A stretch of DNA of 30,973 nt from Kudoa neothunni (taxonomy: Eukaryota > Animalia > Cnidaria). The notes beneath the pieces are model-generated. The model did not search any database. It was not told the DNA's origin and saw only the letters and a program-made list of their open reading frames with translations. The stretch is from the NCBI GenBank assembly GCA_964304625.1, contig OZ199839.1, positions 11,732,535 to 11,763,507 of the forward strand, written 5' to 3'. Shown piece by piece: positions 2,430 through 29,859 of this stretch (the first letter of the stretch is position 1; each line of letters opens with the position of its first letter). Both the position numbers and the translations under genes were made by a program.

Positions 2430-3600
2430 TTAACTCATTACTTCGTCCAGATAATCAATTCCTCTCCATTGTATATTTCTTCCGCATGTTTAAACATTTA
2501 AATAAATCTTTTGATGATATAAATTCTACCACTCTTTCATCTTTAGTTTCAAAATTAGTAGATCCAATAATCAAGGGAGTATGCTCGTCAGAATGTTTTA
2601 ATGTAGGCATATTGACTTCCTTTTTAATAATCTCCGAATTTCCCGCCGAGAATTTTTTATTGCTAAAATTAATATTTGTTTGACGCTCACATTAGGTGGC
2701 TGTAAGAAACCCATATTTTCAGTAACAATTAAATGTAATATCCATTGAACCAACGTCCCATGATTATTTTATTGGGCACAATTTTGTGAGCCCAATCTTG
2801 GTAGGATGTATTTTTTATCAATGCTAACTGCAGAAATATGGCTTTCTATTATATTATTTTTGTAATTTTGTTTGAACAAAAAAAGATTCCGTGGGTTATT
2901 AATTGCAAACCACCAATTGACTTTTTGGTAAGGAATATAAGAGGGATATTGGACAAATGAATTTTGGCAGGGCAAGTGGCGTTATAAAGAAGTATTAAAC
3001 TTTCTTGTACTTCGGTTTGAGTACACTGTCAAAATTAGAAAAATATTTGTTAAATGTTTCTCTAATCATCCATTCTTTCCTGTTTGATTCGTATTTTACT
3101 TGAAATAATTTAGGATTTTTAATACAATGAGGTTTTTGTGATTTCCAATCACAAGAGATGCAATACAACCTTCAGGCATAGATGCATACCGCAAAATAGT
3201 AACTATTATATAGATTTATTTCCCAGTTAAAATTTTTTTCTCTCGACAAAACATAACATTAAAAATAATGGAACTTTATATCGCTAGGAAAATAATGCAG
3301 TTTCTTCAAGATTATAGATACAGTCATCGTTGTTACTTTTGAATTAGTCAATCTATATAGATTATCAAATTTCTACAAAACTTTAGTAAACATAAGCAGC
3401 ATCGTCATGGATAGTGATATTTTTAAAATAAATCGTGATTTATAACGAAGAAATCAATTTATATTTAGTAATTAAGTCCAAAGGTTTTTATAAAAAATAT
3501 TCAAATGCTATCCACGTTGTTCTCATTATCCAACTATCTTAGTTACATTATTTACATTGAATAAAATTAAAATACTTTCTACATTGTTTTTGAAAAATTG
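2430..3600 (-). pseudogene. Decayed Tigger/pogo (CENP-B-like, DDE_1) transposase
   Basis: Minus-strand frames give IYNLEETALF (cf. IYNADETGLF), LVIG..KKPHCIKN..LFQVKYESNRKEWM, NFDSVLKPKYKKV.ILLYNATC, LSNIPLIFL and SWD......NCY.KYGF. Many stops and frameshifts; ends approximate. Not visible in the ORF track. Confidence 0.8.
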
Positions 3601-10472: not shown

Positions 10473-10533
10473 ATGATGTGGAAAAATATTTCTTTTACCG
10501 TTTTAATATTTATCACTTTAGCTTCAATAACTG
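10473..10533 (+). other. Exon 1: N-terminal signal peptide MMWKNISFTVLIFITLASIT
   Basis: ATG at 10473, a basic residue then a hydrophobic core and small residues. Phase-1 donor GTAACA at 10534 and acceptor AG at 10590 put it in frame with the ORF at 10599. Confidence 0.8.
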
Positions 10534-13500
10534 GTAACAATTCTTAATTGGATAAATTTTAATACATTTTTTGGTGTCATGATTACATAGCGAATAACTT
10601 GGACGAATGTAATATTCACTATGCATATAAGTCTAATTTGGATGTGTTGGACGTGTGGCTGAACATTCCAGGACAACAAAAATATATCGAAATAAGCTGG
10701 AAGTTGGTAAATTCAATAAATAGAACTCCAATTCGTATGTCTCGGAAAAGTTTGATTAAATGTGAAAGTAACGGTGTTTGTCCAATGTCAATTTACGACC
10801 TGAGTAGATTAACACCGTACCTATTTTTCGTTGAAACAAACGTGTGTTTACAAAAAGAGCCGCTAAAAATATTTCGAAGTACGTAACCATATATTAATCT
10901 TAATTTAAATAAAATTAAATTTGACTATTTTTAGGTGAATTAAACATTGATATTGATTATAGTATAAATGAAGACTCAAAAGTCGTACTTCAAAGTGAAA
11001 TCTTTCATCACAAAAGATATATGTGCCACATTGAAGTAGATAAAATAATTAAAAATGGGAAAACTAGTTATGCGCCTCTATCTATTTATAACTATTGTGA
11101 TGAACCATCGTATGAAATGTCAAAGAATGTGAATAGTGTTATATTGACCATAATAATAAAGGGCATGATCTACCCCATTAAACTTAAAATTAACAGTGAG
11201 CCAATAAAAATTTCGATGGTGTTTCTAAATTATTTTAGATAAAATGTTGAAAGAGAATCCTTATTTATATGATCAGACAGACGACAATAAAATCTATATA
11301 TATTTTAATAATGATGTTATCGAAAATTACGATTTATATTTGATTAATCATTTCTACATTAATGAAGAAACATCTTTAGTATATCAAATAGAAACAAAAT
11401 GTGGAAAAAATACTGAATCTTATCAGGAAGGAGAATTTGTATGTGATTATTCTTACGGTTTGTCAGAGTTTCTGAGATTGGAGAATAATGGAAACAAAAG
11501 AAGTTTTCTAATACACACACATAAACGTGAGAAAATTATGATAATTTTTAATAAAATTGAATTTAGGTAATGATGATGATATAACTCTGATTAATGACTT
11601 TGGTCAGTTCAAAATAATTATTCGTGATTCAAATTTTGATCAAAATAATATTCAATACACATTGGATAGATTTAATGGAAATAAAATAGAGAAAAGATTT
11701 GATTGCCGAAAAGAAAACAGGAATGGTTGCATTGGATTTATCATTGATAATGCTATTATTTTTGAAAAGGAATTTTCAAAAACGTACAGAATAAAACTGT
11801 TATATGAAAAAAAAGTTTTTGAAGAATTAATCCAATGGAAAACTACATTAATTAAATTTTATCATTCAATTGGATCGAAAAATATTCATGTTTGGTCGAA
11901 TATACCAGAAGAATACAACCTGAGTTGTTTATACACATTGACCAGGGTTGATACTTTATGGGATGGCTATCACGTGGCGGGAACATACGATTCGTATGGC
12001 CCACATTCTCATATTGGCTATAAATCATGCCAAAATTACACAATTGACCTTTCGTCTATCACTCCCAAAACGTTGCATATATATATACCTCAGCTGAATT
12101 ATGTGGATTCCATAAGAAATATATATGAAAAATATAAATTCCGAATTTCGAAATCCAATGATGATCTCAAAATAGCAACAGTTTTCAAGAAAGAACATTG
12201 TAATATAAAATATGTTGACTTAAAGAAAAAACTAGAATACATGTATTCCAACAAAAATATATTCAGTCATAGTGATGATGCATATACCTGTGAATCTAAA
12301 TATTCGTATCCATCAGATATTGATAAAAGAAATATTATTGGAATTTATTTAAAATCACTTGAAACAGACAGCGTCTTCTACGTTGATCTACTTTACGGTA
12401 ATAAATAAAGAAAATTTATAATTCCACATTAAAACATATATTAGACGACGAAAACTTCGACATACAAATTAATCAGCCAGTTTCTGGCCAACTGAGCCTT
12501 GAATTTACAAAACCAATGGCTATTAATTCATTAGAGTATATAAAGATATTTCAAGTGGATGGTCTTAAAAATGACTTGCAATTATTTTACAAGGAATATA
12601 ATTCGATAAGCCATGACACAGAAAAATTATCTCAATTAGAATTGGGAGTATTATTAGCTAAAGTTGTCTATCTAGAGGTAAAAGTTAAATCAGGTCCCAT
12701 TTTTAACAAAATTCTATCATTGCGTAAGAAAAATTTGGTTGATGTATTTATATTAAATCTTATTTTAGCTGATATTTCAGTGGATCCTTATGTAAAAGTT
12801 AATGAAAGAAATGTTGAAATTATTCCTCTGAATGCCGTAAATGTTGAAGGAGAATGTAAATTGGTGTTAAGTTCTTACAATGGATCTGACGAATATACAA
12901 CGTCAAAATTAGCTTATATCCATAAATGCAACGAAAAACTAGTTATTGAGAATTTAAAGGAGAGAAATGATATTTCTATCTACAAAGACAATCGACCGAT
13001 TGTTAGACAATCCTTTACTTTATGTATGATTATATTATTCCATTAAGAAAGTTCAAAATAAATATTTGAAATATAATAATTACTTTAAATATTTACTGAA
13101 ATATAAAATATTAATTACACAATTAAATTTTCGTATTATTTATAATATTTGAATTACGTCTTATAATTGATTATTTAAAATTATAAATATAATTAATTAA
13201 AAATTATAATTTTGATGAATTGTAGATAACAACAATTTAATAACTGGAATGGAATACTATAACAATACAATTTTGATTCGTCACAAAAAACAAGGAAATG
13301 AAGTCTCAAAATGCACGATCGAGGTTAAAGAGACTAATACGAACGGAAAAACATTATTCAAAAAATGTCATCCTGTTACAGATTCCTGTAATGCAATTGA
13401 AGATTGTGATAACATTACCATTGATATGGTATATAATAAAAATTTTCATCTTAAACTTTCCGTCAACGAAGATGTGGAAGAGATGACTGTACAAGAAAGT

Positions 13501-16500
13501 AATTAATGGAAATGAATAAAATGCTACAACTAATTATTAAATGATAGTTCCACTTGAGATAATTTGGGAACACCAATGGGGAGAACAACTCATTGAAAAT
13601 ATTCCACCGAATGGCTGGTATTGGTTTTAAATGCTGTTACAAACTCGAAGGTGTGACCGAGGGATCAAGCAATGAAAAATTAATTGGAAACGAAGATTTG
13701 AGCAATTGTCAACTTGTAGAATGCAATAATTTAAGTTTTACTCTAGAATCTCTTTCTGACATATCAGAAAAATATATAAAATTAAAGTTTAGTTATCAAA
13801 TTGAAGGGGAGAAAACTGCAAAGCATTACGATTTAGGTAATTATAATTACTAAAGCATTAGTTTCAGGCTTGTCTAGAAATATTTAAATAAAATCATATA
13901 TTTAATGCTTTTCTTTTAAAACTTTAATGTAATTGAAAAAGGTTGTAGAATTTAATCCATTTCTTGACAGAGCCGTGTTTTCACGCTATAATATTTATAA
14001 AAGTATTATTAAACATATTTTAAATTTAAAAAGATCGAACGGATGAAGTTAATTATTAATGCTTTTAGGATTAAATTGATTATAAAAATTAAAAAAAGAA
14101 TTTTTTGTCCTAATTTATATCCAATATGACATTTCTAAACTATACTTTAGGTCATACCAAACATGATTATGTCTTAACACAAGGAGAGGGCTCAGTGTAT
14201 TACAAACATATTTTAAAATTAAAAAATGATGCTTCACTAAATCAGAAGTGGTATTTATATAAAAATAATGTCTTGACGGAAGTGACTCAAAACATTGACC
14301 AAATTGATACCGGTTCAGTGACATACAAATCTTTGAAGCCCGACTTCGAGCAGGAGTACAAATTGGCTGTTGAAGTGGGATCTAACGATGAACAATTATT
14401 AATTTACTACTATCCTGAGCAGAATTTAGTAAGTTACGAATTTTATTAACCAATCTTCCCATAGTACTTAAGAAAAGGATTCTATTATTCATTAATTATT
14501 TTTAAAACGAATTTTTTATTTTTGGATTAATGAACAAAATACTTATTAAAGTAATTTATTAAAATTAATTAATATCATTTAGATGTTATAAAGGAAAAAA
14601 ATAAATTCATTTACTTTGGATCAGAAAATTCAATTTATTCATAATATGCACATTAACTATTACAAATAAGAAATTTTTAAACGTTAGTATTAAATTATAT
14701 ATATATATATATATATAATTTGAGATCATTCCAAAAAAAGTGATGTATATTAGCATCAACGAATAATCATGCTACTCTGTTTATATAAATATATATTTTA
14801 TCTAAGTTCTGTAATATAAAAAATAATATTAAATATTAATGAATCCCATAATCTGCTAACTTGAAAAATATAAATAAAAAAGAAAAATATTTGGAACTGA
14901 ATCTGTGAATTAATAATTAGTCAACTACAGTAAACTCTCGATATTGCGTAACCTTTTGGAACTATGCATGAGTTACGCTTTAGCAAGAAATTATTAAATA
15001 CCTAGAATTTAATGTAATTTATATTCATATATATATATATATATAATGCCTTGATAAATATATGTTTCATATGTTTAATTAATAGAATTAGACAATATAA
15101 AAATTGTATTAACTTTTCATTAATTGGGAAGAATAATTTTTTTATGTTTTCATTAAATATTTGACAAAATGTTGTGCCAATTGTTTACATAGAAAATTAT
15201 TTATTTACATATTTTTAATTATAATGTATTATTTCTATTTAAATAATTAAGGTATGAATAATAATGTAATCTTTTAAACATTATTTATAGGAATCTTTGG
15301 TTGAAACAATAACTGATTATATGGGTCACATATTAAATATTGCATTAACACCTGCAGAAGCTATAAGTCAAAACAAATACATAAAATATTATGCATTTGT
15401 AAATGAAATATTCATCGAGGACGAGAAATTGAAGAAAAAAGTTTGGTGCAATAAGAACCAACTATCCGATGTACATGACTGTTCAATCGATTATCATGTA
15501 TTACCAAATCAAATAATTAAACTTTGTTTAATTGAAAATGAAAGTATAACATCTTGCAAAATCTACAAATCCAGTAATTAAATATTACATTTTTATTTGA
15601 TGATATCTCTATAATTGAATTATTTAGAATATTATTTTCAAAATATTACATTATTATCAATTGTTGATAATCATTACAAAATTGCAATATCATTTAATTC
15701 GGGTGTTGAAACCAAATGTTATTTTTTATTTGATTTTATCGACGAAAGAACCATATCTTCTAATCCGATAAATTGTGTATGTGATGAGAACAAATATGAA
15801 ATCACATGCTCTAGTTACAACTCCCATTTGGTTGTTGGGCGCAATAGAATGATTACGTTTGTGTTGGATAATAAGTCGGAATATTTTGGTACTCTCAGAA
15901 TTTCTGTCCCAATGCCTCTCAGTATTTTATATTATTTCAATATATTATAAGCTCATTATAGAAACCTATTGGGATAGAAGTGAATATTCAGTAATTCATT
16001 TGGAAAATCAGGAAAAAGCGATAATAAAATTTAATTCATTTAACTGTGAATATGCTGTTAATAACAATAATTTGGATAAAAATAGAAAAGATGTCTCTAT
16101 CATCACTGGTAAAAAAATAGACGACACTACTGCTATAAGTGCTGGTCAACTTGATCTAACTTGTCCTAATATCTCAGCATCAAATCTACAAGATAATAAT
16201 AAGATACTATTAAGTTATTCGTTCGATAAAAAAAATTATTTACTTCAATTAAATAGTAACTTTACTTGATTTTATAAAATTTTCAAAATTACATATTTAG
16301 GGTTCATTAAACTACGTCTAGTCGATTATAATGCAATAATCTTAGGACGTAGTGCTCATTTTTTTGGAATATTAAATACTTTTTTGAATTATAATTATAC
16401 TTTGAATACTGTTCTCTATTTAACTCAATCTGAAAACTTTGAAGAACAAACAATAAATACAAAAATTCAAGATATAAAAATTGTTTGTGAAGGTTATTAT

Positions 16501-19500
16501 TGTTCAAACTTATCTTCCCAAATGACTGACGCTTATACATTTATGAACATTTTTAATAGAAAAATTAAATTTGAAAGAAGTATTATTTTTTATTAACATA
16601 AATTCTCTCAAATTTTTTTTTATTAAAATAAAATTTTAGTCCCTACTATAATAAGTGTTGACGTCTTTGAAGTGAGCGAAAAACAGTATATGATAGATTA
16701 TAATATTGACCAGAATCTTCAAAAAATAATCATAAGTGAAAAAGTTACCGATGAATCAAACAAAGTTTGTTATAGTAGTAAGGATAAAACTATTTTATGT
16801 AACCATAAATCTTGTGAACATAAAATCACTATCAACGGTTGTATCACTCCATTATGGTTACATATTGATTCAAAAGATATGGTTTTTTTCAAGTTCTGTT
16901 TATAAATGTAACTGAAACTAACAATTAGAAGTGATTTCATTTACGTTATATTTAGTTGAAGCTTTAAGAACGATCCCGTTTGAGTATATAGACGACGTGG
17001 ATCATAATAAATACAAAATAATATTAAAATTAAAAAAAAATGGAATGAATAAAGACTTTATTTCAAATCATATTACGATTGGTAACAAAAACATGGAAGA
17101 TACGTGTTTCAGTCTTGATGTTTTGACAAGCGTGGAATTGATAATGTTGGAGATAAAAGAAAATTGTTATCTTGAGGATAGAAGAATTCAGTACAAAGAA
17201 CCACTTGTATTGTACCCCCTTTGGAGTGACATAGGTAATAAATATTTTAGTTTAATAAATAAAATAAATTATTTTTAGATAAGTTGTATACCTATGGGAA
17301 AACGACAATTAGCGAAATGTCTGTAAAGTTACATATTTATCTCCCAATTCCAACAAATTCATTAACAGTGTCGTATATGAAGGTTACAGATTTGAAAACA
17401 AATAATGAAATCACTGAATACGAAAATGAAGATGAAATAATTGTTAATTGTTATGAAAAAACGTGTACACACGACATAAAATTTGCGGGAGAAACTATGC
17501 CCGATGAATTTGAAATATACTTTCGTCCCAGGGAAATCAATGATTTGAAGTTTTACAGCAAAAGTATAATTTTTATATTATTGAATAAGATATATAAATT
17601 AATTAGGTTCAAACCAAAATCTTAATTATGTTGATTTTACATATAAATCTGATAAAATATTTGTTTACTTGGAGGGTGATACAATTGTACCTGGTGTAGA
17701 GGTATTATTAAGACAAAATAGCAACTCAAGATATGAATCATCAACTATCCAAACCAGCGATGGAAAATATTATTGTACGTTTTCTCAGGACAATATTTTA
17801 GATGGAACATACTTCACATTTCCTGGTAGTGACAATAGAATAACCTTAAAGAAATATGAAGGTAGCTATCATTTAATAATCATAGTTGTTCTTAATATTA
17901 CGATTAATTGAGATATTGAGTATTAATAATTATCAAATAGAAATATTAGAGATTTACATAATTTTATGTTATTAATATTAAATAAGTCACAACTAAAAGT
18001 TAAACTTCTTGCATATTAGTTAACGCGATAAGATAACTCGTAGTTACGCTTTAACCCTCCAGGTCAGTGTTGGGTCAATTGGACCCAAGCGCATGCATTG
18101 AAAATCGACAACTTATCCAAAGCCTAAATAAATAAAAAATCTTATTCGCCCAAAATTCAGTATAATTTTATAAACTTTCTTCAAAAATCGTGGGAAAATT
18201 TTTTCCAAAATAAAATAAAAATTACACCACGTCGTTTTGGGATCCAATGGACCTTATGACTTTCATTTACAAAATATAAGAAAATATAATTTTACAAGAT
18301 TTATTATATTTATTGAGAGTTATATCGAGTAACTATTAAATAAATAGCTACAAACTATATCAGCAATCCATCGACGCGTGCGCATTCATTATTTAAGCGT
18401 GCTATTCTTGTTTGATTACGGAGGTACCTCATCAGGTTTTATAATTTCGTGTTGCGGAGAGCATATAAAAATATATCTGAAATTTTCTTGTGTTTCTTGT
18501 TGACATTACATCGCGTTGTTTACAATATGATAAATTGACATAAAGTTTTTAAATAATTTGTTTAAATAAAAATCTACTTCAATAAACCTATAAATATAAT
18601 ATTTCTAATGTAAACTATCAACGTGAAATTTTGCGCATAGGCAAGCAAAACATAACCTTAATAATTGAAAATTTATTCTAAATCCGCAAACTGAATTGTT
18701 CTCATATTTCATCAGTTAGTGCCAAATATTATTGGGAAACAACTGTGTGAAATTGAAACGTGGGGTATATTTATACTCCATTTTTAATTGAAGCATGTAG
18801 ATTTTTTAGCTACTTAGATTGTAAATAATACATGCCCTTCATTGTGAAGCTGTATTTAATAAAAATATTATATACAGTTTATAAAAAAGAATTATGAATT
18901 CGTTAGGTCTTACAAAGATATTATATGAAAGGATTAATATATATTTTTAATTTAAATAGGCCCATTCCCCTACAAAACCGGGGTTTCGCACTAGTTATAC
19001 ATATATTTTTATGTTTCTATTTCATCATCACTGCAATTTAGAAAGATTCAGCTATGAAATGGAATATTATTGGGATTCTCAAAGCCTGAAAATTAAATTG
19101 ATACTAAATTCATTACAGACATATCAAAATTTAAATCTCAATTATTCATTGCGTGAGGAGAATCAAAGGAAAGAGAATACAATAACGCAATACAAAAATA
19201 TTGTTTGTACTGCAAATGTATGCAGCTGGGATTTGGAAAATGTCCGTTCAAACAAAAATATGATTTTAGAATTTTCTTCTGGAGAACTTATCAGTCCTGT
19301 TTCCTATTTTATCAAGAATGGTAAATTATCACTATTAGAATGTTATTATTCTTTATTTCCTAAAATTTTTAGATACATGCTCATTCTCTGGTGTTAAGCA
19401 AAATTTTGGGTCCACAGGCGACGTTTCTGTAATAGTAAATACAACAGATGCTCAACCAAAGGAGTTAGAAGTCGTTTATTCTGTATATGAAACGACTGTT

Positions 19501-22500
19501 GGGAACCAAGAAATAGTGCAAAAAACTACTAAAATGATGCCTTGCAATAGATATGAATGCACGTTGGATATTCCAACCATATCACGCATAGAAAGCTATA
19601 ATGTTCTTTTAAGTATGCCGAATTGCAGTCATAAAATGAAGTTTAAAATAAAGAATTGTATGCTTTATATAAAAATATATTAATTAATTTTGTCTATTAG
19701 CTCCAAGCACTTACAAACTAGGATACCATTACGTCTATACTGGCTACGATGACTACAATGAAGTTACTCTTAACATAGAATTGAAACTTACATTGCCCTA
19801 TGAAAGAATTGTTCTGGAATGGACTTTAAAATCGAGTTCAAATTCAGAAATTGTACAAACTTCAAATACACGTATCAATCTGTCAGGAGAAGATTCAGCG
19901 TTTTCGTTTCAAATACCAGATATTAATGTATATTCGGAATATTCCATTGATTTTTCATCTGATTATCTCATTGAAATGCCTGCTAGAAATTTGATTGTTA
20001 AATGTATATTTGTAAATTTATTTTAATATATTTTTTATATTATGACTTAAATTAAGCGGAAATCGACTATGAAATAATACCGAAATGGAAAGATGGTCAT
20101 TTTTCAATGTCACTAAAATTAGATGTACCAATAAACAGATTAGACCTTAGTGGTAAATTATTCACCCTTAAAAAGACGAATTCTGGATTAATTGAAGAAG
20201 AAGAAATCACTTTTGATGAAGAATTATATTGTGATCAAGGCGTTTGCGACTATGACTTTGAAAAGGTGACAAAAAGAGAATATTTCAAAATCACGGTAAA
20301 TACGGATTTATTGAAGCACAAGGATCCAATCTTTTTCAAGAAAGGTAAATTATTATTAAATAATTTTGATGTTAAAAAAATTTGTTTAGAACCTACTACG
20401 TTTAATATTAACTATAAATACGTAAATAATGTATTGTTGGTTAAGTTTACGATGGAAAATGAATTTGAAGAGGTATTTATGAAATGGAGCCTGTTGGACA
20501 CAGAAAACAATTCGATCAGTATTTCGAACAATCAGTACAAACAGATGGAGGTTGATAATAATAAATTTACCTTAAATCTTGGAGAAATGGATCAAACTAA
20601 AGAATACAAATTAATTATTGAATCCGAAGAGCTTACTGGGGATAAAGAATTTGTAATAGAAAGTAATAACTAAGAAAATTATTATATATTCTTATGTTTA
20701 TGAGATTAATATTGGATTGATATAGAGAATTATATATTATCTAGTTTCAAAAAATATAACTTACTATTACGACCTAAAAATTATAATTTTAGAGAGGTTT
20801 AAATATGCCTTAAACCATAAATGGGATTATCACAAACTCCAAATAATACTAGAAATTTCTTCGAGTGAATCTCTGGTAGACCTTACTATCGAATATTCCT
20901 ACTACGAAGTAGATACAAATATTGATGACGCGACTAAAAATGAAGTGACAATTAAATGCGAACAAAATATCTGTAAATTTGAAATTGAAAAAATAAACTA
21001 CAAAGTTGATCACATATTTACACTCCATTCCCAAAATCTTATCGATCACGCTCAGTCTAAAATAGTGCGAGGTAGAATAAACACTTAACAAGGAGTTTTG
21101 ATTTCCGAAATAATAATATTCTTTAGAGCCATGTCCACTGTTAAAAATACAGCAGAAGTCTTTCGAAAACGATAAACTCACGTTAATAATTCAACTTTTA
21201 TCAGCATACGAAGAGTTATCAGTTGATTATTCAGTTTATGAATCAGGTGAAAACACTGGCTTACTCACTCAAGCTTCAACTGAACTAATATCGTGTATAA
21301 AGAATGCATGCGAATTATCTATTTCAGGCGTAACAATTACAAAGTCTTATAATGTTGCTGTGAAAGTACCACTGTGTGAGAATAACAGTACTCTATCAGT
21401 TAAAAAAGGTATAACATATCATTCATAAAAATAATAAATTGTTCTAGCTCGAAGCAACTATACATTAACGTACAGTTATCGAAAAGTACAGACCAATAAA
21501 GTTGCACTTAGTCTTCAATTACAGCTTTTATTACCTTACGATAAAATCGAGTTGGAATGGTCTTTGAAAGCAAGTCCAAATTCAAATGTCGTTAAGAGTT
21601 CATCTTCAAAAACCGAGCTGATTCGAGCGAATTCCTTATTTTCATTATCTATATCCGATGTTGATATAAATAATGACTATACAATTGAGTTCACTTCCGA
21701 ATATCTTGTGGGAAAAACAAACGGAATCGTCAAAGTTAAAGGTATAAAATAATGAATTTGTTTATTTCATTCGCAGCTTGCTATTTAATTTATATATTAA
21801 TTATCGAATTTTAATAAAATTCATTATTTTTCCATAGTTAATAACTTTGCAATAATTAATGTGTTTTATATTGGATTCATGTAGCAAAATATTTTAAAAA
21901 ATATAAACATATTCATTAATATATAACGTATTGAAATATTTTTCCTTCTTCATAATTGGTTATTTATAATAGATAAATATAAATTGCCACTAGTTTAACT
22001 AATTAGTCGTCTGAATATCACAAAATAATAGTTATATGTTTATGTATAAACAAAAAATTTTTTAATGATATAATTGACAATAATCAATGAGTTTTTAATT
22101 CAAAGCTTAACGAAAAATATATGAGAATAATATTTTTTAACAAAGGAAATTAATACCATCTATAAAAATTATTTAATTCAACATTTGTTAGTGCACACTT
22201 TTTTGTTTGTAAATAAGGTGTGTAGTAAAAATGATGCGTTGGCTATTACCACAGATCCATGTAATCTTCACCTTCGACACGGCTGTCGATTTCTCCATTA
22301 TTAGAAACTTTATAAAAAATTGATTTCAAAAATTTGTAATAATTGATCCCACATAGTTTATATATTATATTTTGAAGTAATGTTTCACCACAGCTAAAAA
22401 ATGGAAAAACGTGAAAACAAATATCATTAATTTGGAATTGGAGAATGATTCCTTCAAACACTTTCTTAATGTGAAATGCTTGTCAATAATATAGTTTGGA

Positions 22501-25500
22501 CACATTGAGATTAATTTGACACTACATTTATTATTTCGGAAACATAACATTTTAAACTCATCCATTTCATCATATAGAATACATGCAATATTCATATGTG
22601 CTTGTCTAGCAGAATCATCAGCAACAGAAATGTACAAAGGTGCCCCAATAAATTAATAAAACAAAACTAATTAAGGTTCCATTGCAACAAGCAGTTAATA
22701 TGTCGCATCAACCATCAATAGTTCTTGAAAGGAATCCAGTGTATTAAGCATTTGGTGAACATAAAATAAATCCACAAACATTGTTATTATCGTCATATTA
22801 AACATTCACTATGTAATTATATTCCTTTTTCAAAATTTCCTCAACCATGTTGATACCGCCAAATATGATTTTTAAGAAATTTTTAAATTTGAAGTGATTT
22901 TAGCGAAATATTTTCTCAGTTTCATTATTGATCTAAGTTAGAATGAGTTTTTTATTGACTCTCAACGTAACTAACTCAGACGATTATTCGTCATTCGAAT
23001 TAATATTGAATTGACTAGGCAAGTTGTTGTAAATTCGTGGGTCTTGGGAACGATTTAGGGCACAGCTGCGTGACCTGACTTAAAGTAAATTCGCGTCAAA
23101 ACTCATCCGTAATGTAATTCAAAAGCGCAATTCTTATTAAAAGAATTTCTTGCACTCTCTCCTTCATTTATTTTTCGTTATTGGACGCCAAAATGACACA
23201 CAAACGTATCTTCGTAATATAGCATTTAGTCTTTAAAAAACCTGTTGATGTGGTTCTTTACTGATTCAGACCTTTTTGATCGACGAATACTTTAATTTAC
23301 ATTCCTCTTTTTTGAGAATCTTTTGCGGACTATTATTATGCTCCGAATGATTAAAATTTCATCCCAACATAAAAACCCTTAAATTAAGTCGTTAAATTTA
23401 GTTTGACTTAATTCGCGTAACACATTGAACAATGCAATGAATGCGAAATTATAAAGTTAACTGGGAGAAGATTGTAATATTTATTTTAATATATTTAATA
23501 TTTCATTATTTTATGAAGTTTGTAAGAGCGTAAGTATTAGATCAATTATTCCTCAAAATATTGAATTCTTTCAAACTTTTCTTCCTTTAATTTTTTTAAT
23601 AGAATAAAAAATTATCAATGTCTTTAAGTAATAATTTTTATGATGGGTAATATATCCATTAATTAAAACATAATCTTCTATCAATATAAATATAATCTAA
23701 CTTCATATTATTGAGCTAATTAAAATACTCTGATGTTAGAAGGAACGAGACCAATGATAAATAAAACGATACCTAATAACAGATGGATAACTAATGTTTA
23801 TGTTTTATTACACAGTTGCAGCAAACAATTTCAGAGTTATTATTATTATAACAATATTATGAACGGCGAAAACACATTGATTTTATTTTTCTATCCGAAT
23901 CTTGCATACACAGATTGCACCATTTTTTAGCTTTAGAAGTGAACCTTTCGTTATTCCAAGCAGGAAGTTCATTATTGAGAAAAGGTTACACTGATAAATC
24001 AGCTAATTCTTCTAGATACAGTAGGTGACGGGTCGTGGGCACTAAAATGGGAATTGGGTTCGAGGTGCCCACGCCTCATCAAATGCCCTCGAGCCGTCAT
24101 GACACATGCGAACAAAGCAAAATTTTATGTGGACTCTTGCATTTTAGTCTCTCATATTTATCACTATGTTTGCATTTATGTTCAAAAGTATATTAATAAA
24201 ATAAAATATTCTTATAGCAATCATGTTAAGATTAAATACGATTAATCTAGTCGATCCTTGACTTTAATTTGTAGAAACAGACCATTTTGACAACGTGATG
24301 ATAATACCAATGATTTCTGTCAACAAAAATTTAAATAAATAATAAATGCAATTCATACATCAAATTTTATTACAATCAAAATTATTTTTTATTTTAATCA
24401 CAAAGGTTTGGACAATTTTAAATAAAAACATGCAGGAAACTTTCTTAATGAATCATTATATCTTAAGGAAGTGTTGCGTAACAAATAAATTATTTTCTGT
24501 ACTCAAGAGAAATAGGAGTAAGAGTTAATAATCAAGATAAATTTAATATATATTGATATGAATAATTTCATAAAATTAATTAATAAAATTAAGTTGAAAA
24601 TTTTTAGCACACTTATTAGTTGGATTTTGCCTTGGAACAATTATTAATATTTTACTGGCAAAGCTCTGACATTCTTGAATCGTAAATCGTCGTTTCCAGA
24701 TCTAGAACCGTAGATAACATTTGATAATCTCATTTTATGAAAAATTTGTTCATTTTGCTCAAATACATTAGAGCACCATTCATAGAAATAGTAAATTTTT
24801 TAGATGTTTTGTGGTAATTTGTAATTTATATTCCATTATGAGACTTCATAATAGATTCTTTATTACCCAAAATCCTATTTAAAGAGGATAAATATTTTAA
24901 GTTAAAATAAATGAGAGTTTTAGTTTATCTGTTTTCCCATTCGATATTCTTTCATAATATTACATTATATCCACTCTATCTTTCAAAGAACGAAACTGCT
25001 TAGTTCTCTTCAAGTGCCCACGACCCATCATTTGGGCAATTTTATTGTTAAGTTTAGTACCCACGAGTGGTAAATTTGAGCTAATTCTTATATACAGTGA
25101 ATTAAAAAAAACTAAGGTTTTAATAATTTATTATAATTGTTATGCTTCTATTCGATTCACTTTAATTAGTAACGGTATTTTGTAAATCATTAAATCACGG
25201 CTCGTGCCCACGAGCCGTCACCTACTGTATTCGGCTCTCGAGATGTTAGGTTAATTAGATCTCGTTTTTCACAAGTAAAACGAGTTGACGAAACATAAAT
25301 CAATCATACTGTAAAAAATTACCATTGGCCATCTTTTTGTTTATCGTTTTACACCCGGGGTAAATAGAATACGATAGACCGTATCTACGCCACATTTAAT
25401 GTTGTTATAATCAATTATAACCTCAGGTTTTTTAGTATGTTCCGGATGCAAATTAACATTTTTAGATGAAAAATCCAACAAAATCATAGCCTTGTTCTTT

Positions 25501-28500
25501 TTGGCACATAGGATAACAATATCTTTTTCTTGAGATAAACAAAAATCGAACTAAAGAGTCTTTTATTTTGTTCGACTTCATAATCGGTGGAATTTCCGTT
25601 TTATTGTGACGAAGAGTCCCAAGCATTGTTAGTCCAAGGTCAAGAAGTTTGTCAGCCAATCTGATCGACACAAAGAAATTATCACACGATATTTTTATCA
25701 AACCCGTTTAGATATGACGACAGCTCTAAGACAATCTTTTCTCCCGCATTTTTAGTAACTAGATTAATAGTTTTACAAAGATGGACGTAAATATTATGGG
25801 TATGATTGGTGCATGGATCGGTTAATAGAATAAACTTCTCGCCATTAACTGCAGGCTTATATAGCATATACAATTTGAATGGATATCTAACACGAAATGC
25901 TACCTGCAAATCATCTATAGTTGGACTTACGGAGGGAGCCAAACATATTGGTAGAATGCTTTCCCATTTATTAAATAAGTCATTTATTGGACAACACTTA
26001 TCAATTTTACGTCGTAAGGTCCTAGTCTCAAAATCGTCAAAGTGAATATTTCCATTGATTTGTGTGAATCTTTGTAACGACATTATTTTTTAAAAATATG
26101 TTGCCCCTTAAACAGGCTCCACAATTGTTTAAGGATTCCATCATGGATTTAGAAATACACATATATACAAAAATTCCCATGTATATTTTCATTTCCACCA
26201 AGGTTAGTTCATTCCACTTATTTCCGTAATGGAAATACCAAAATTCATTTTCGTTAGTAATGATGATTTAATAAAATTTGTCGTCAAAAAATAACGAAAA
26301 AAAAATCCATAATGCAACAGATTCATGACGATGAGAATGCGCTAATGCATGGGTCTTTAATTAAAATATTATCCTTCGTTGATTTGATATTTGAGGGAAT
26401 ATCAGAAGATAATAAAACATTGTTTTTATCCTTGTACATATTTATTGACCCAAACTCATTAGAGCTATCAAAACTGGTAGAAGAAAAATTATTTTCTACG
26501 TAAACTTCTAATTCATTGCAATTTGATTCTTCAATTGACGGAAATTGAGTAAGCAGGTTCTCCATTTCGCATATTAAGGATCGAAGGTTAGCGGAAATGA
26601 TCACGGACATAAAACCTTGTTTTTATCAATAACTATTTGACCAAAATTTCTAATGATGCATTATTTAATTTTTTACGGTTTATACATGTTATAATGAATT
26701 AAAACTTGGGATCCACCTGGACCCCAAAACGTCTAAGTGTATAAATAATATTACAATATTTAGGAGTTTCTTTTAAATTAATTTTAAGGTATAAAACCTT
26801 TTTTTATTCTGTGTAACATATCTGAAGGATAACATCTAATTTTATTGAATAAAACATTTTGAACAAGTAGTAAATTGCCACAGAATTTGGTTTGTTGCCC
26901 ATTGGGAAACAAATATGCTCGGAAGGTTAATAATTATGTTAATTTATTAGTAAACTAAAATTCGAAAATTTACATTTTAATCTCGGAATAAATAATATAT
27001 TTTATTATTAAGTTCTTAAAAATTAATTGTTTTAGAGTTAAAATGTTAGCCTGCATCTTTTGATTGTTAGCAGTTATAATAATTTAGTTCCAATGACCTA
27101 TGATATCAACAAAAACCTTGTCGATAATAAAGTTCAACTAACAATTCAGCCAGAGATAGATGTTAATCGATTAGACGTTAAACTCGAATATTCCACTTTG
27201 AAAAAGACTCTTAATGAATATGTCGAGAAAGAGAAAAAATCCTTAGATATAACGCTAAAATGTATCAAAAAAGTTTGCGAACATCTTTTAGAAGATATTG
27301 ATAAAAATGAATACTATCATATTAAAATTGTGTCTGATTTATTGGAAGGGAAAGAACCTATTCTTATCAATAGAGGTATTATTTTTAATATTTTATTATT
27401 TTTAATATAATATATTTAAGAACCAACTGCATTTGAGGTCAATTATAAATATATCAATGATGAATTATTGGTTGAGTTCATATTGGAGAAAGACATAGAA
27501 ATTTTCCTTAAATGGAGTTTACTGGGAATGGGAGAGAGATCTGTAAAAACCTCCAATGATCAAATTCATATGTTATCATGCGAAACAAAAAAATGTTCCA
27601 TCGGACTTGGCAAGTTGGACCAAGCTGAACAATATAAATTCGCCTTTCAGTCTGATGAACTTCAAGGAGTCAGCGAATTAATAATCGAAAGTAGATATTT
27701 TTTCATTAAATATAAATATTATTATTCGTTAAAAATTGATTAAATAAATTATTTTTTTATTTATATTCACTTTTTCTAGTTAACTGGGAAATACTTTTGA
27801 CAAAATCAGAAGAATTGGATAAGACAATGGAACTCAATGACGAACCAATAGTATAGTTAATTATGCCGACTTTTCATATGGTATGCATATATTAGATTAC
27901 CGGTAATTTTATAAAAGCTTGGAATAAAATAGTGTATGAAGTAATCGAAACAAGTAACTAAAACCACGTACAATTACAATTATAATAACTTTCAATTTAG
28001 CACCAATTCAAAATAATTCAACCATTGAAGACAGCCCAAAAAAAGAGAAGGAGGAAGAAACTTCGTAAATAGATCAAAATAATGACATTAATATAATAAT
28101 TATCTTGTTTGTAGAATCTTCTTAAAACAAATTAACCTTTTGGACAAGAATATCATAAATATTGACGTTACTGAGGAAGTCGATTCGGACAATATAAAAT
28201 TGAAGACAATCACAACACAAGAGGCTTCAAAAACGATATATTTTGCTAAACCAATAGCCGACAATGAAATTAATGACATGTTACAGAATTCAACGCTTGC
28301 TGTAAACAACGATGAGCCATTGCAATCCACTTATTTGCACATGGAATTTTCAGCTGATGATTCTTCCGCTGAAGCGGACAACCAGAGTAAAATTGTGTTG
28401 GCCGTAACAAAAAATAAGGAAATTAACAATTCAACACAAACGAGTGATGTTATTGCAGGAGATGTACTAATCATAAAAGTTTCAAATAATCAGACAAAAA

Positions 28501-29768
28501 AATTAAATATAACGTTCAGTCAAATTATAAAAACCGATGATAAAAAGAACAATTTTAGATGTTGCACGTTAGATAGTATATTAATATTATTAATTATTGT
28601 AAATAATAACCATGTTTCCTTATAAAGGTAAAACATTAGCTTGGGAAACTAAATACTGCTCAATTTTACATGAAGTTCCTATTTCAACATTCCTCACCAA
28701 CTACACATGCACTTGCAATCACACCACAAGTTATGCAATCATATATGATGTTTTTGATAATGATTCATCAAAAAATGTTTTCTATCAACATGAAATATCT
28801 CTAATAACTACTTGCATTTCGATGGTATTTTTGTTCCTCACAATTGTGTGTATTTTATCATCTAAGTAAATTTTGTACGGTGAATAGAAATTGAATGTTA
28901 ACTGTTTGATTATAGAGTTGTTAAAAAAATAAGAATTTTGGCTCAATTGTGGATGTGTGTGGCTATATTTATATTCCACTTGGCATTTATCTTGGGAAAT
29001 GTGTTTAACAAAATACATCAATCGTGTTTTTATGTTTCCATCTTCTTACACTATGGCCTTATGAGTCAATACATGGCATTGTTATTAAATTCTCTTGTTG
29101 TTTTCCAAAGTCTTATATTAACAATGAAAAAAGTAAAGGAAATAATTATGAAAATTATAGCACTTCTCTTTATAAGTGAGTATATTCATTTAAACTTAAT
29201 AATATTTAAATTTTAGTCGTCCCCATAATTGTTGCAGCAATCTCTAGCAAGTTCTTTAGTGAGAATTACGTCATAAAAACAAAGTATTTAAATTATATTT
29301 ATTTTTATAACAATTTAATTGAATTTTATAGTTGTATACCACATGGTTGGCTAAAGTTGGTGACAATCACGATTCCTGGAGCATCTATACTATTATTTAA
29401 TGTAGTGGTATTGTTCCTGGTATTACGCACAATCTACAGATCTGAATTTACAAATAAGAAAAAAAGTTCAATTAAACGACGTACAAGACAGCTAATGTTC
29501 CTGTTCATGTTGCTAGGAATGCCAATGTTAATTCAACTTTTATCTTCCTTCATTAAAAGTGAATTAATTACATTGGTAGCCAATTGTTTAAAACACGTCA
29601 ATGGGAACATTCTTATTTTTCATCTTTGTTGTTGGAAACAATGAAATGAGAACCCATATAAAGTCAACAATTGGAACAGGATCAAGCCGGAAGAAGATAA
29701 TATCATCAAGTAGAACTAGATCCACAACCAAGATGACAACTTTTTCATCAAGATATAAAAAACAATAA
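10473..29768 (+). CDS. Giant adhesion GPCR (~3,277 aa; signal peptide + ~29 tandem beta-sandwich-like modules + GAIN/GPS + 7TM), 36 exons
   Basis: Manual splicing with GT-AG introns joins the + strand ORF fragments in frame. Exons: 10473-10533, 10591-10878, 10935-11195, 11239-11526, 11567-12397, 12445-12723, 12769-13023, 13226-13498, 13548-13836, 14151-14428, 15291-15573, 15628-15921, 15962-16255, 16301-16579, 16640-16907, 16956-17234, 17279-17563, 17607-17861, 19042-19320, 19373-19657, 19701-20003, 20057-20344, 20390-20662, 20793-21071, 21127-21408, 21448-21741, 27088-27375, 27421-27690, 27780-27850, 27896-27953, 28001-28064, 28115-28575, 28628-28865, 28916-29175, 29217-29283, 29332-29768. 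Requires removing one base from three homopolymers (13578-81, 16883-89, 29590-93). The GPS motif and 7TM are unambiguous; that the whole ectodomain belongs to one transcript is inferred from phase compatibility. Confidence 0.85.
14696..14717. repeat. (TA)n microsatellite in intron 10; a second copy at ~15028-15045
   Basis: Direct observation of TA dinucleotide runs. Confidence 0.85.
14926..14990 (+). mobile_element. Orphan Tigger/pogo-like terminus in intron 10
   Basis: TA-CAGTAAACTCTCGATATTGCGTAAC resembles pogo-type TIRs. AGTTACGCTTTA recurs at ~18042. No partner end found. Confidence 0.35.
18051..18260 (+). mobile_element. piggyBac-type left end in intron 18
   Basis: TTAA-CCCTCC terminus, a quasi-palindromic TGGGTCAATTGGACCCA, and an internal motif CGTTTTGGGATCCAATGGACC similar to the reverse complement of 26707-26740 in the intron-26 piggyBac, at a similar distance from the end. 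Confidence 0.6.
18965..18995 (+). mobile_element. Possible Helitron 3' end (hairpin + CTAG|T)
   Basis: CCCC-TACAAAACC-GGGG, then 7 nt, then CTAG followed by T. A similar degenerate motif lies at 9065-9095. Confidence 0.35.
22170..23420 (-). pseudogene. Decayed Mutator-like (MULE, ZSWIM1/3-like) transposase in intron 26
   Basis: Minus strand: N-terminal Cys/His finger-like stretch (VCHFG...KNCAFEL), YDDNNNVCG, FQELLMVDATY (cf. FPEVLxxDATY), and PNYIIDKHFTLRKCLKESFSNSKL..CFHV (cf. MTDxxxALxxAxxxxFPxxxxxLCxFH). Stops and frameshifts; ends approximate. Confidence 0.75.
23830..26930 (-). mobile_element. Decayed piggyBac transposon (PGBD-like transposase) in intron 26
   Basis: MSLQRF...IHFDD, TIDDLQVAFR..PFKLYM.YKPA, CDNFFVS..LADKL, GTLRHNK, YNNIKCGVD, RWPMVIFY, ISRAEYLEELA and a C-terminal CNLC..DRK cysteine-rich remnant at ~23870-23920. 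The 5' terminus GGAAGG|TTAA is at 26921-26930. The 3' TIR was not found. Confidence 0.9.
24019..25227. mobile_element. Non-autonomous Tc1/mariner-superfamily element (1,209 bp) nested in the piggyBac
   Basis: 24-bp TIRs CAGTAGGTGACGGGTCGTGGGCAC (24019-24042) and GTGCCCACGAGCCGTCACCTACTG (25204-25227) with one mismatch. TA on both sides (24017-18, 25228-29). Internal GTGCCCACG-like subterminal repeats; no long ORF. Confidence 0.92.
28115..28752 (+). other. GAIN domain C-terminal part with GPS autoproteolysis motif and Stachel peptide
   Basis: Spliced sequence RCCTLDSKTLAWETKYC...TNYTCTCNHT|TSYAIIYDV matches the GPS consensus C..W...C...CxCxHx|T/S-phi-A. The catalytic His codon is at 28720 and the P1' Thr codon at 28726. 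Confidence 0.9.
28790..29645 (+). other. 7TM domain, secretin/adhesion (7tm_2) family, exons 33-36
   Basis: Seven hydrophobic segments with family hallmarks: TM1 CISMVFLFLTI, TM3 C...FLHY, ECL2 Cys, TM5 IP...LFN, TM6 LLG, TM7 NTSMGTFLFFIFVV plus helix 8 NNEMR (after the +1 correction). Confidence 0.88.
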
Positions 29769-29859
29769 CTTCCTATTAGTTAAAATAATATTGTTATTTC
29801 TCTAGTATAATATTAGTTTTCGTTCTTAGTTAGACTTCATTTCTTTAATTTGCCTTCAA

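Follow-up and report, generated by a model that had tools for sequence, protein, structure and literature searches.

The vertebrate receptor ADGRV1 (VLGR1/GPR98) is built of a signal peptide, tens of beta-sandwich repeats, a GAIN/GPS region and seven transmembrane helices of class B2, and reaches ~6,300 amino acids with ~35 Calx-beta repeats and other domains. The same design is read here in a predicted gene of Kudoa neothunni, a myxozoan parasite of fish, which spans positions 10473 to 29768 of a 30,973-nucleotide stretch of DNA (assembly GCA_964304625.1, contig OZ199839.1, positions 11,732,535 to 11,763,507 of the forward strand; the whole stretch is termed the window). As compared to ADGRV1, the repeats of the Kudoa gene number ~29 and are FN3-like, no Calx-beta match was obtained in the scanned frames, and there is no sign of orthology. 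We read the locus as one gene for a giant adhesion-class (B2) G-protein-coupled receptor (GPCR), belonging to a lineage-specific family, with splicing and expression predicted, and assign this reading a probability of about 0.72.

Among described proteins, FN3 is listed as one of the ectodomain domains of adhesion GPCRs in sponges, filastereans and choanoflagellates (PMC4302439, PMC12716839). These receptors place FN3 before the GPS and the seven helices, as does the Kudoa gene. They were found by the Pfam fn3 model, which the Kudoa modules escape; the latter moreover often carry a C-x4-C motif, are far more numerous per protein and are almost without sequence relatives. Tenascin and the receptor tyrosine phosphatases of the LAR/Dep-1 type share the module fold, and are retrieved by the Kudoa module profile through many of their repeats, but in place of a GPS and seven helices their C-terminal part is a single-pass anchor, a phosphatase or a fibrinogen globe. 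Polycystin-1 likewise has a run of beta-sandwich repeats followed by a GPS site; its repeats are PKD domains, and it further differs by a REJ module, by eleven helices and by a PLAT domain that follows the first of them, none of these features being seen in the scanned Kudoa frames.

The ~19-kb receptor gene runs on the + strand from 10473 to 29768 in ~32 predicted exons separated by GT-AG introns throughout. Between 10400 and 29800 the + strand holds 36 stop-to-stop open frames of at least 60 codons (4,174 codons), as compared to 22 on the − strand (1,717 codons) and to a mean of 7.4 (maximum 16) in 200 mononucleotide shuffles; the window is AT-rich, with 24-35% G+C, and eukaryotic. Each neighbouring pair of frames can be joined through a GT-AG intron with the reading frame kept open. 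Homology searches and folding were run exon by exon, the joining being a local frame-continuity check by script. Phase 1 is used in 24 of the first 26 introns, and most introns are 39-60 nucleotides long with a TTTAG-like acceptor; longer ones lie at 13024-13225, 13837-14150, 14429-15290, 17862-19041 and 21742-27087. Intron 9 (14429-15290; 862 nucleotides) is in phase 0 and has a perfect GTAAGT donor; in it, two (TA)n runs (14690-14716 and 15030-15046) flank ~310 nucleotides, which may be a small inserted element. The acceptor of intron 7 is ambiguous, a phase-1 choice giving a short exon of 61 amino acids and the phase-0 alternative a longer one, and several joins are possible on the path from 27850 to 28115. 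Exons 1-26 (10473-27690) comprise 2,735 codons, to which the linker, the pre-GPS exon and four GPS/seven-helix exons add ~510, for a total of ~3,250 amino acids closed by a TAA stop codon at 29766-29768. The 25 ectodomain exons encode ~29 modules of ~95 amino acids, three in exon 5 and two each in exons 6 and 21. An earlier reading made from the letters of the stretch (the sequence-only reading) had predicted a protein of ~3,300 amino acids from more than 30 fragments with ~29 modules, and these figures agree with those obtained here. The features of the gene are as follows.

Exon 1, 10473-10533, + strand: ATG and signal-peptide-like MMWKNISFTVLIFITLASIT, as read from the sequence; ends in phase 1
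Exon 2, 10591-10878, + strand: first FN3-like module, at the distal tip; among the most conserved parts
Exons 3-4, 10935-11526, + strand: two modules of ~90 amino acids, too diverged for the module profile; open paralogues; colinear on metagenome scaffold L038
Exon 5, 11567-12397, + strand: 276 amino acids, three tandem beta-sandwiches by model; candidate ligand-binding head
Exon 6, 12445-13023, + strand: 192 amino acids, about two modules
Exons 7-9, 13226-13498, 13651-13836 and 14151-14428, + strand: paralogous copies 73-100% identical
Exons 10-17, 15291-17861, + strand: eight modules, one per exon; profile matches in exons 14 and 16 only
Exons 18-24, 19042-21741, + strand: eight FN3-like modules, comprising a five-module block (18-21) and the start of its duplicate (22-24)
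Intron 24, 21742-27087, + strand: 5,346 nucleotides, phase 1; contains a decayed piggyBac-type transposase
piggyBac-type transposase relic, 25465-26089, − strand: Pfam DDE_Tnp_1_7 on two adjacent frames, E 1e-13 and 4e-5
Exons 25-26, 27088-27690, + strand: final pair of FN3-like modules, each a duplicate of one module of exon 21
Linker exon, 27780-27850, + strand: short, NWEILLTKSEELDKTMELNDEPI; an extra mini-exon before 28115 is possible
Pre-GPS exon, 28115-28575, + strand: 153 amino acids ending ...FRCCTLD; presumed GAIN subdomain B, from position and conservation
GPS/helix-1 exon, 28628-28865, + strand: W..C....C.C.NHT/TSYAIIYD, then hydrophobic helix 1
Helices 2-4, 28916-29175 and 29217-29283, + strand: two exons; helix-3 Cys and FLHY motif
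Last exon, 29332-29768, + strand: SCIPHGW (Cys of the second extracellular loop), helices 5-7 and Ser/Thr-rich tail; frame break at 29590-29593

The coding nature of these exons is indicated by their paralogues. Open paralogous copies of every exon occur in the same genome at 25-100% identity, and the ratio of non-synonymous to synonymous substitution rates (dN/dS) is mostly 0.3-0.8 against the paralogues and 0.13-0.56 against the more distant genes at C2:3.2 Mb, where dS could be estimated. In some copies adjacent exons run together as a single open frame: exons 4 and 5 in one C2:3.2 Mb gene, and exons 5 and 6 in paralogue A4, where the frame is 503 amino acids long. The linker peptide NWEILLTKSEELDKTMELNDEPI is 58% conserved in the C2:3.2 Mb paralogues. 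Automatic annotation based on protein hints is likely to miss or fragment genes of this kind. The interval 29284-29331, an intron of 48 nucleotides with GT-AG ends, is a multiple of three without a stop, and the frame is kept whether it is retained or removed; the matching interval has stops in paralogues A1 and A4, so splicing is obligatory there.

The identity of the ectodomain modules has been approached by both fold and sequence. In-register similarity links 13 of the modules to one another, those of exons 2, 14, 16 and 18-26. The AlphaFold2 model of exon 23 (21129-21407) is a seven-strand beta-sandwich with a predicted local distance difference test score (pLDDT) of 87.4 and a predicted template-modelling score of 0.76. 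When this model was compared to structure representatives, the top 15 matches were all FN3 domains or FN3-based binders, with Z 8.9-9.7 and a root-mean-square deviation of 2.6-3.4 Å over 80-88 of 93 residues; the neighbours include fibronectin modules 10-12, tenascin, EphA2, collagen XX and monobodies. Foldseek alone returned weak Ig-V matches together with a monobody at a template-modelling (TM) score of 0.66. The recurrent C-x4-C motif flanks the turn between strands 4 and 5 of the model (C56 and C61; strands 45-57 and 60-66), and many of the rod modules would be stapled by a C-x4-C hairpin.

The sequence signal points in the same direction. A module profile, made as a 48-row alignment of window modules and paralogous modules, gave only 16 matches among 1.84 billion proteins, the short ones being fragments of true relatives. 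Its long matches are a Mytilus tenascin (E 4e-8, eight stretches), an FN3-rich receptor phosphatase (5e-7, 12 stretches) and another protein with ten FN3 domains (4e-7), and Pfam fn3 is present in all three. Among solved chains the profile retrieved only the IL-31 receptor, at E 0.46. The Pfam scan of the ectodomain covered 15 open frames, including exons 2, 21 and 25 (10 of the 25 ectodomain exons lie outside it), and yielded no fn3 match at E up to 1 and nothing above noise. Since fold and remote sequence signal agree, the profile-matching modules are very diverged domains of the FN3 type. A local profile of the 13 modules with profile-profile comparison did not recruit exons 3-13, 15 and 17, whose homology to the FN3-like modules is putative.

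The sequence-only reading had described a rod of ~2,700 amino acids made of unfamiliar beta-sandwich modules. The beta-sandwich rod is borne out by the models of exons 23 and 5, while the modules lose their unfamiliarity, being diverged FN3-like by structure match. Its statement that signatures of cadherin, EGF, LamG or Calx-beta repeats are lacking is in accordance with the absence of Pfam matches from the scanned frames. It had also proposed AlphaFold and Foldseek on each exon module, which was carried out for exons 23 and 5 and found FN3 for exon 23, and a search of proteomes with a hidden Markov model of the modules, which is answered by the 16 matches described above, tenascin and the FN3-rich phosphatase among them.

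The arrangement of the modules records how the rod was assembled. In-register similarity pairs exon 18 with 22, 19 with 23, 20 with 24, the first module of exon 21 with exon 25 and its second module with exon 26; the match of exon 21 is at 1e-15 with exon 25 and at 1e-23 with exon 26. The rod was built by phase-1 duplication of one module per exon, including the duplication of a five-module block.

Downstream of the rod, the GPS motif can be read at 28628-28770. On the window exon it is matched by Pfam at E 5.3e-4 with 20.9 bits (cut-off 22.5), and on the paralogous exon it reaches 25.8 bits, above the cut-off; another ten GPS matches in the genome, with 23.2-28.7 bits, all exceed it as well. 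Helices 5-7 of the window match Pfam 7tm_2 at 1.5e-3 (18.3 bits, profile positions 160-247), colinear with the match of helices 2-3 of a paralogue (12.1 bits, positions 30-119); the matching open frame of L039, a contig of another sequencing run, passes the 7tm_2 cut-off with 24.0 against 20.6 bits. A genome-wide Pfam 7tm_2 search gave no match, nor did its control, the exons being too short and diverged, and a metagenome scan with the helix 5-7 profile returned 537 pattern matches, none of them a relative. Against solved chains, the profile of helices 5-7 found ADGRF1 as its best match (E 0.005) and that of helices 2-3 ADGRE1 (E 0.12), again in colinear order (8g2y, 9uco), with the PAC1 receptor following in these searches; the similarity to ADGRF1 and ADGRE1 is weak and allows no placement in a subfamily. 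Hallmarks of class B are kept across paralogues at 53-77% identity, namely the helix-3 Cys with FLHY, Cys-x4-W in loop 2, LLG in helix 6, N..xG.F.F in helix 7 and the Ser/Thr-rich tail. With a GPS directly before helix 1 and a seven-helix region of the secretin/adhesion type, the gene is of the adhesion-GPCR type, as the sequence-only reading had held.

The residue at position −1 of the predicted GPS cleavage site is T and not the usual L. On L039 the pre-GPS exon has a counterpart of 34% identity that continues into the GPS motif and helix 1 within one open frame (L039:1608-2321), and its look-alikes by language model are GPS-carrying clusters with scores of 0.82-0.86, taken as a lead only. 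A GAIN fold around the GPS is assumed; autoproteolysis at H-T/T, a ligand, force sensing, G-protein coupling and expression are what we infer for the gene product.

Conservation is concentrated at the other end of the molecule. For the peptide of exon 1, conservation amounts to 95% in paralogue A4 and to 58% in A2 (intron 1 occupies 10534-10590). Exon 2 matches the module profile at 5.9e-29, itself being a seed sequence, shows a dN/dS of 0.13 against a C2:3.2 Mb paralogue and is 66% identical on L038. Exon 5, modelled with six paralogues (pLDDT 75.4), is all beta and forms three tandem beta-sandwiches. It is the most conserved part of the family, with 84 invariant columns in its alignment, and the most invariant stretch, residues ~109-178, includes a Gly/Tyr-rich loop which the model leaves disordered. 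In structure searches it falls closest to tandem arrays of the FN3, cytokine-receptor and macroglobulin types (Foldseek E 1e-6 to 1e-5; VIA Z up to 7.7), and as Z stays below 8, a generic sandwich is all that the model shows. A protein-atlas search yielded no usable match for exon 5, and the fold search of the atlas yielded only generic tandem FN3 or macroglobulin-type arrays with TM below 0.5. The dN/dS of exon 5 is 0.16 as compared to cluster B, and the head as a whole displays 0.13-0.16 against 0.2-0.5 in most rod modules when compared to the C2:3.2 Mb genes. Because of the invariance of exon 5 and the lowest dN/dS, which it shares with module 1, the N-terminus is read as a binding head and the remainder as a variable rod. 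A single homologue of exon 5 was found among 5.8 billion protein clusters; together with the 16 module matches, this restricted distribution upholds the lineage-specific character claimed in the sequence-only reading.

The K. neothunni assembly was recovered from reads of yellowfin tuna and comprises 40.2 Mb in three chromosomes and a mitochondrion (bioRxiv 10.1101/2024.11.01.621499). The window lies on a 12.04-Mb record, ~277 kb from the record end, and its gene stands in a tandem cluster of four paralogues on the same strand at C2:11.66-11.83 Mb. Genome-wide, at least 19 seven-helix matches were recorded at ~15 loci, and every one of the module matches, of which there are at least 120, falls at these loci; the gene belongs to a family with at least 15 loci and is not a singleton. 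The detailed comparison of paralogues covered loci other than those on C1 and at C2:6-10.5 Mb. In the window, exons 6, 7 and 16 show patches of 100% identity to A2 and A4 beside exons at 60-80%, and the last 2 kb (27740-29800), which includes a 36-codon stretch at 27958-28065 of doubtful coding status, is near-identical in all four cluster genes. This mosaic of identical patches and the near-identical end indicate gene conversion. Paralogue A2 (C2:11712000-11724000; loci L011, L012 and L002), just upstream of the window, is shorter and decayed, and despite this decay several of its exons are 94-100% identical to those of the window gene. Two relatives come from unrelated public samples outside the assembly: L039, a Logan contig of run SRR31175926 with 19.5% G+C, is 34-56% identical over the GPS and seven-helix part, and L038, an ENA metagenome scaffold of sample ERZ28624939, is colinear with exons 2-5 at 36-66% identity. 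Both presumably derive from other myxozoans.

Several observations weigh against a functional giant receptor encoded by the window. The FN3-like profile leaves 16 of the 29 modules without a match, among which the three modules of exon 5 have been modelled; every single-exon match of the window to GPS or 7tm_2 stays under the Pfam cut-off; and the pre-GPS exon profile found no match among solved GAIN domains. Constraint is weak, as dN/dS lies at 0.3-0.8 and in some exons approaches or exceeds 1. Two RNA runs (X5, X6) gave 0 reads on 26700-29800, a result which is no test of expression and agrees with the very few transcriptome reads reported to map to the K. neothunni assembly (bioRxiv 10.1101/2024.11.01.621499). 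Finally, the sequence TTT-AAAA-C at 29587-29594 has one A more (A-run 29590-29593) than paralogues L002-L006, and the window copy, as assembled, ends 20 codons past the break and without helix 7. If the extra A is real, the window copy has recently been disabled, and its protein would stop before helix 7, as the product of a young pseudogene or at best as a six-helix adhesion protein without GPCR signalling. We regard this as a serious possibility, at somewhat below even odds. The break is present in the assembly, whereas the five paralogues read ...ANCLNTSMGTFLFF... / ...ANCLNTSMGTFLFFIFVVGN... in one frame and the distant relative L039 is likewise unbroken; the decay of A2, with at least four modules split between frames and a frameshifted GPS exon, shows that gene death occurs in the cluster, and dN/dS against A2 is ~1 for many exons. 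On the other hand, the break is the sole one in ~9.7 kb of coding sequence and falls in a homopolymer inside the 2-kb region nearly identical in four paralogues, where a consensus error is plausible with the ~7x HiFi coverage of the assembly (bioRxiv 10.1101/2024.11.01.621499). All covering contigs of two DNA runs display only the shorter, in-frame A-run at 29590; as their depth (20-26, versus 5-6 in the unique flanking intron) and their mismatches to the window indicate a merging of four near-identical paralogues, these contigs are indecisive. Even for a disabled window copy, the description of the family still holds for the intact paralogues.

The 5.3-kb intron 24 raises the question of whether one gene or two is present, that is, a secreted or separately anchored FN3-repeat protein (exons 1-24) followed by a short adhesion GPCR starting inside or after the gap. 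The gap is long for this genome, holds the remnant of a transposon, split by stops and frame changes, and is bridged by no transcript. The piggyBac-type relic accounts for much of the extra length of the intron as compared to the paralogues, which share the junction and the module order; in them the intron measures 1.2-2.3 kb (A1 and A4) or is short (the C2:3.2 Mb genes). At its phase-1 donor aag|GTATAA exon 24 ends without a used in-frame stop, exon 25 begins in phase 1 at TAATTTAG, and the frame around exon 25 has no signal-peptide-like start. Furthermore, exons 22-26 repeat exons 18-21 module for module, so that the intron sits inside the duplicated block, which exons 25-26 complete and whose first copy is continuous, and on the 3.4 kb of L039 modules, pre-GPS, GPS with helix 1 and helices 2-7 follow one another in this order. 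Phase-1 continuity, the block repeat across the intron, the paralogue junctions and L039 therefore led to rejection of a two-gene arrangement, which we hold to be very unlikely. It is also unlikely, to a lesser degree, that the family is mainly structural or adhesive, for example by keeping cells of the parasite or parts of its spores attached to each other or to the host, with the seven-helix part as a membrane anchor rather than a G-protein-coupled signaller; the strong divergence of that region from the class-B consensus, its sub-threshold scores and the fast evolution of the ectodomain would fit such a role, but the class-B hallmarks are retained across paralogues that are 53-77% identical, and G-alpha genes are present in the genome. 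The GPS motif after a long run of beta-sandwich repeats would also be expected of a protein of the polycystin-1/REJ type. That identity was rejected and is given next to no weight, as the loop after helix 1 is short and without a PLAT/LH2 match, the helices number seven and not eleven, the similarity is to 7tm_2, ADGRF1 and ADGRE1, and no PKD domain was matched in the frames scanned.

For the preferred reading, a single giant adhesion GPCR, the following mode of action may be proposed. The conserved N-terminal head (module 1 and the three-sandwich exon 5) would bind a partner on another cell or in the matrix, and the fast-evolving rod of ~25 further beta-sandwich modules, of which 12 match the profile (13 with module 1), would span the distance and transmit pulling force. 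After the short linker, the GAIN/GPS segment would be cleaved at the predicted H-T/T site. Force or ligand could then expose the tethered-agonist-like peptide TSYAIIYD that follows the GPS, and the exposed peptide would activate the seven-helix core, with its Ser/Thr-rich tail, and a heterotrimeric G protein.

Four features are new here: the FN3-like module, a sequence orphan stapled by C-x4-C; how many modules there are; a head of three sandwiches that is conserved; and a family grown to at least 15 genes within the strongly reduced genome of a parasite. An FN3-rod adhesion-GPCR family of this kind was not described in the literature searched, myxozoan adhesion GPCRs were not described in the literature found, and receptors or adhesion genes are not mentioned in the K. 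neothunni genome paper (bioRxiv 10.1101/2024.11.01.621499). That at least 15 receptor genes in the largest size class have been retained and amplified in a genome of 40 Mb points to a function indispensable for the parasite. Myxozoans are strongly reduced cnidarians, with a few cell types and a few thousand genes, whose sensing of and attachment to host tissue are, to our knowledge, little understood. For parasites that spoil fish muscle, the family supplies specific candidate receptors of cell-cell or host contact, and its natural series of rod lengths on one receptor chassis is useful for testing force sensing by adhesion GPCRs. The sequence-only reading had suggested a possible long-range adhesion or mechanosensing receptor, or a host-contact receptor if the organism were a parasite, and the source organism is indeed a fish parasite. 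As a speculative extension, with the odds clearly against it, the family might form the variable host- or cell-contact receptor system of the parasite, clustered, gene-converting and fast-evolving, in which exon skipping and block duplication would provide many rod lengths and surfaces and in which a ligand of the host or of a partner would be recognized by the conserved head, with signalling through G proteins. If true, this would be an antigenic or adhesive repertoire on a GPCR chassis, undescribed for any parasite in the literature searched.

Rfam and tRNA scans of the window gave no match. An N run lies directly 3' of the window (L001 ~3260-3432; 600 in the cluster region). Upstream of the receptor gene, open frames at 609-1800 on the + strand encode a Spin-doc/BED-like zinc finger (zf-C2H2_12, E 3e-6), the sole Pfam match there, followed by motifs resembling a hAT-type transposase (...HTNVRWLSLG...), and this segment is probably a transposon relic.

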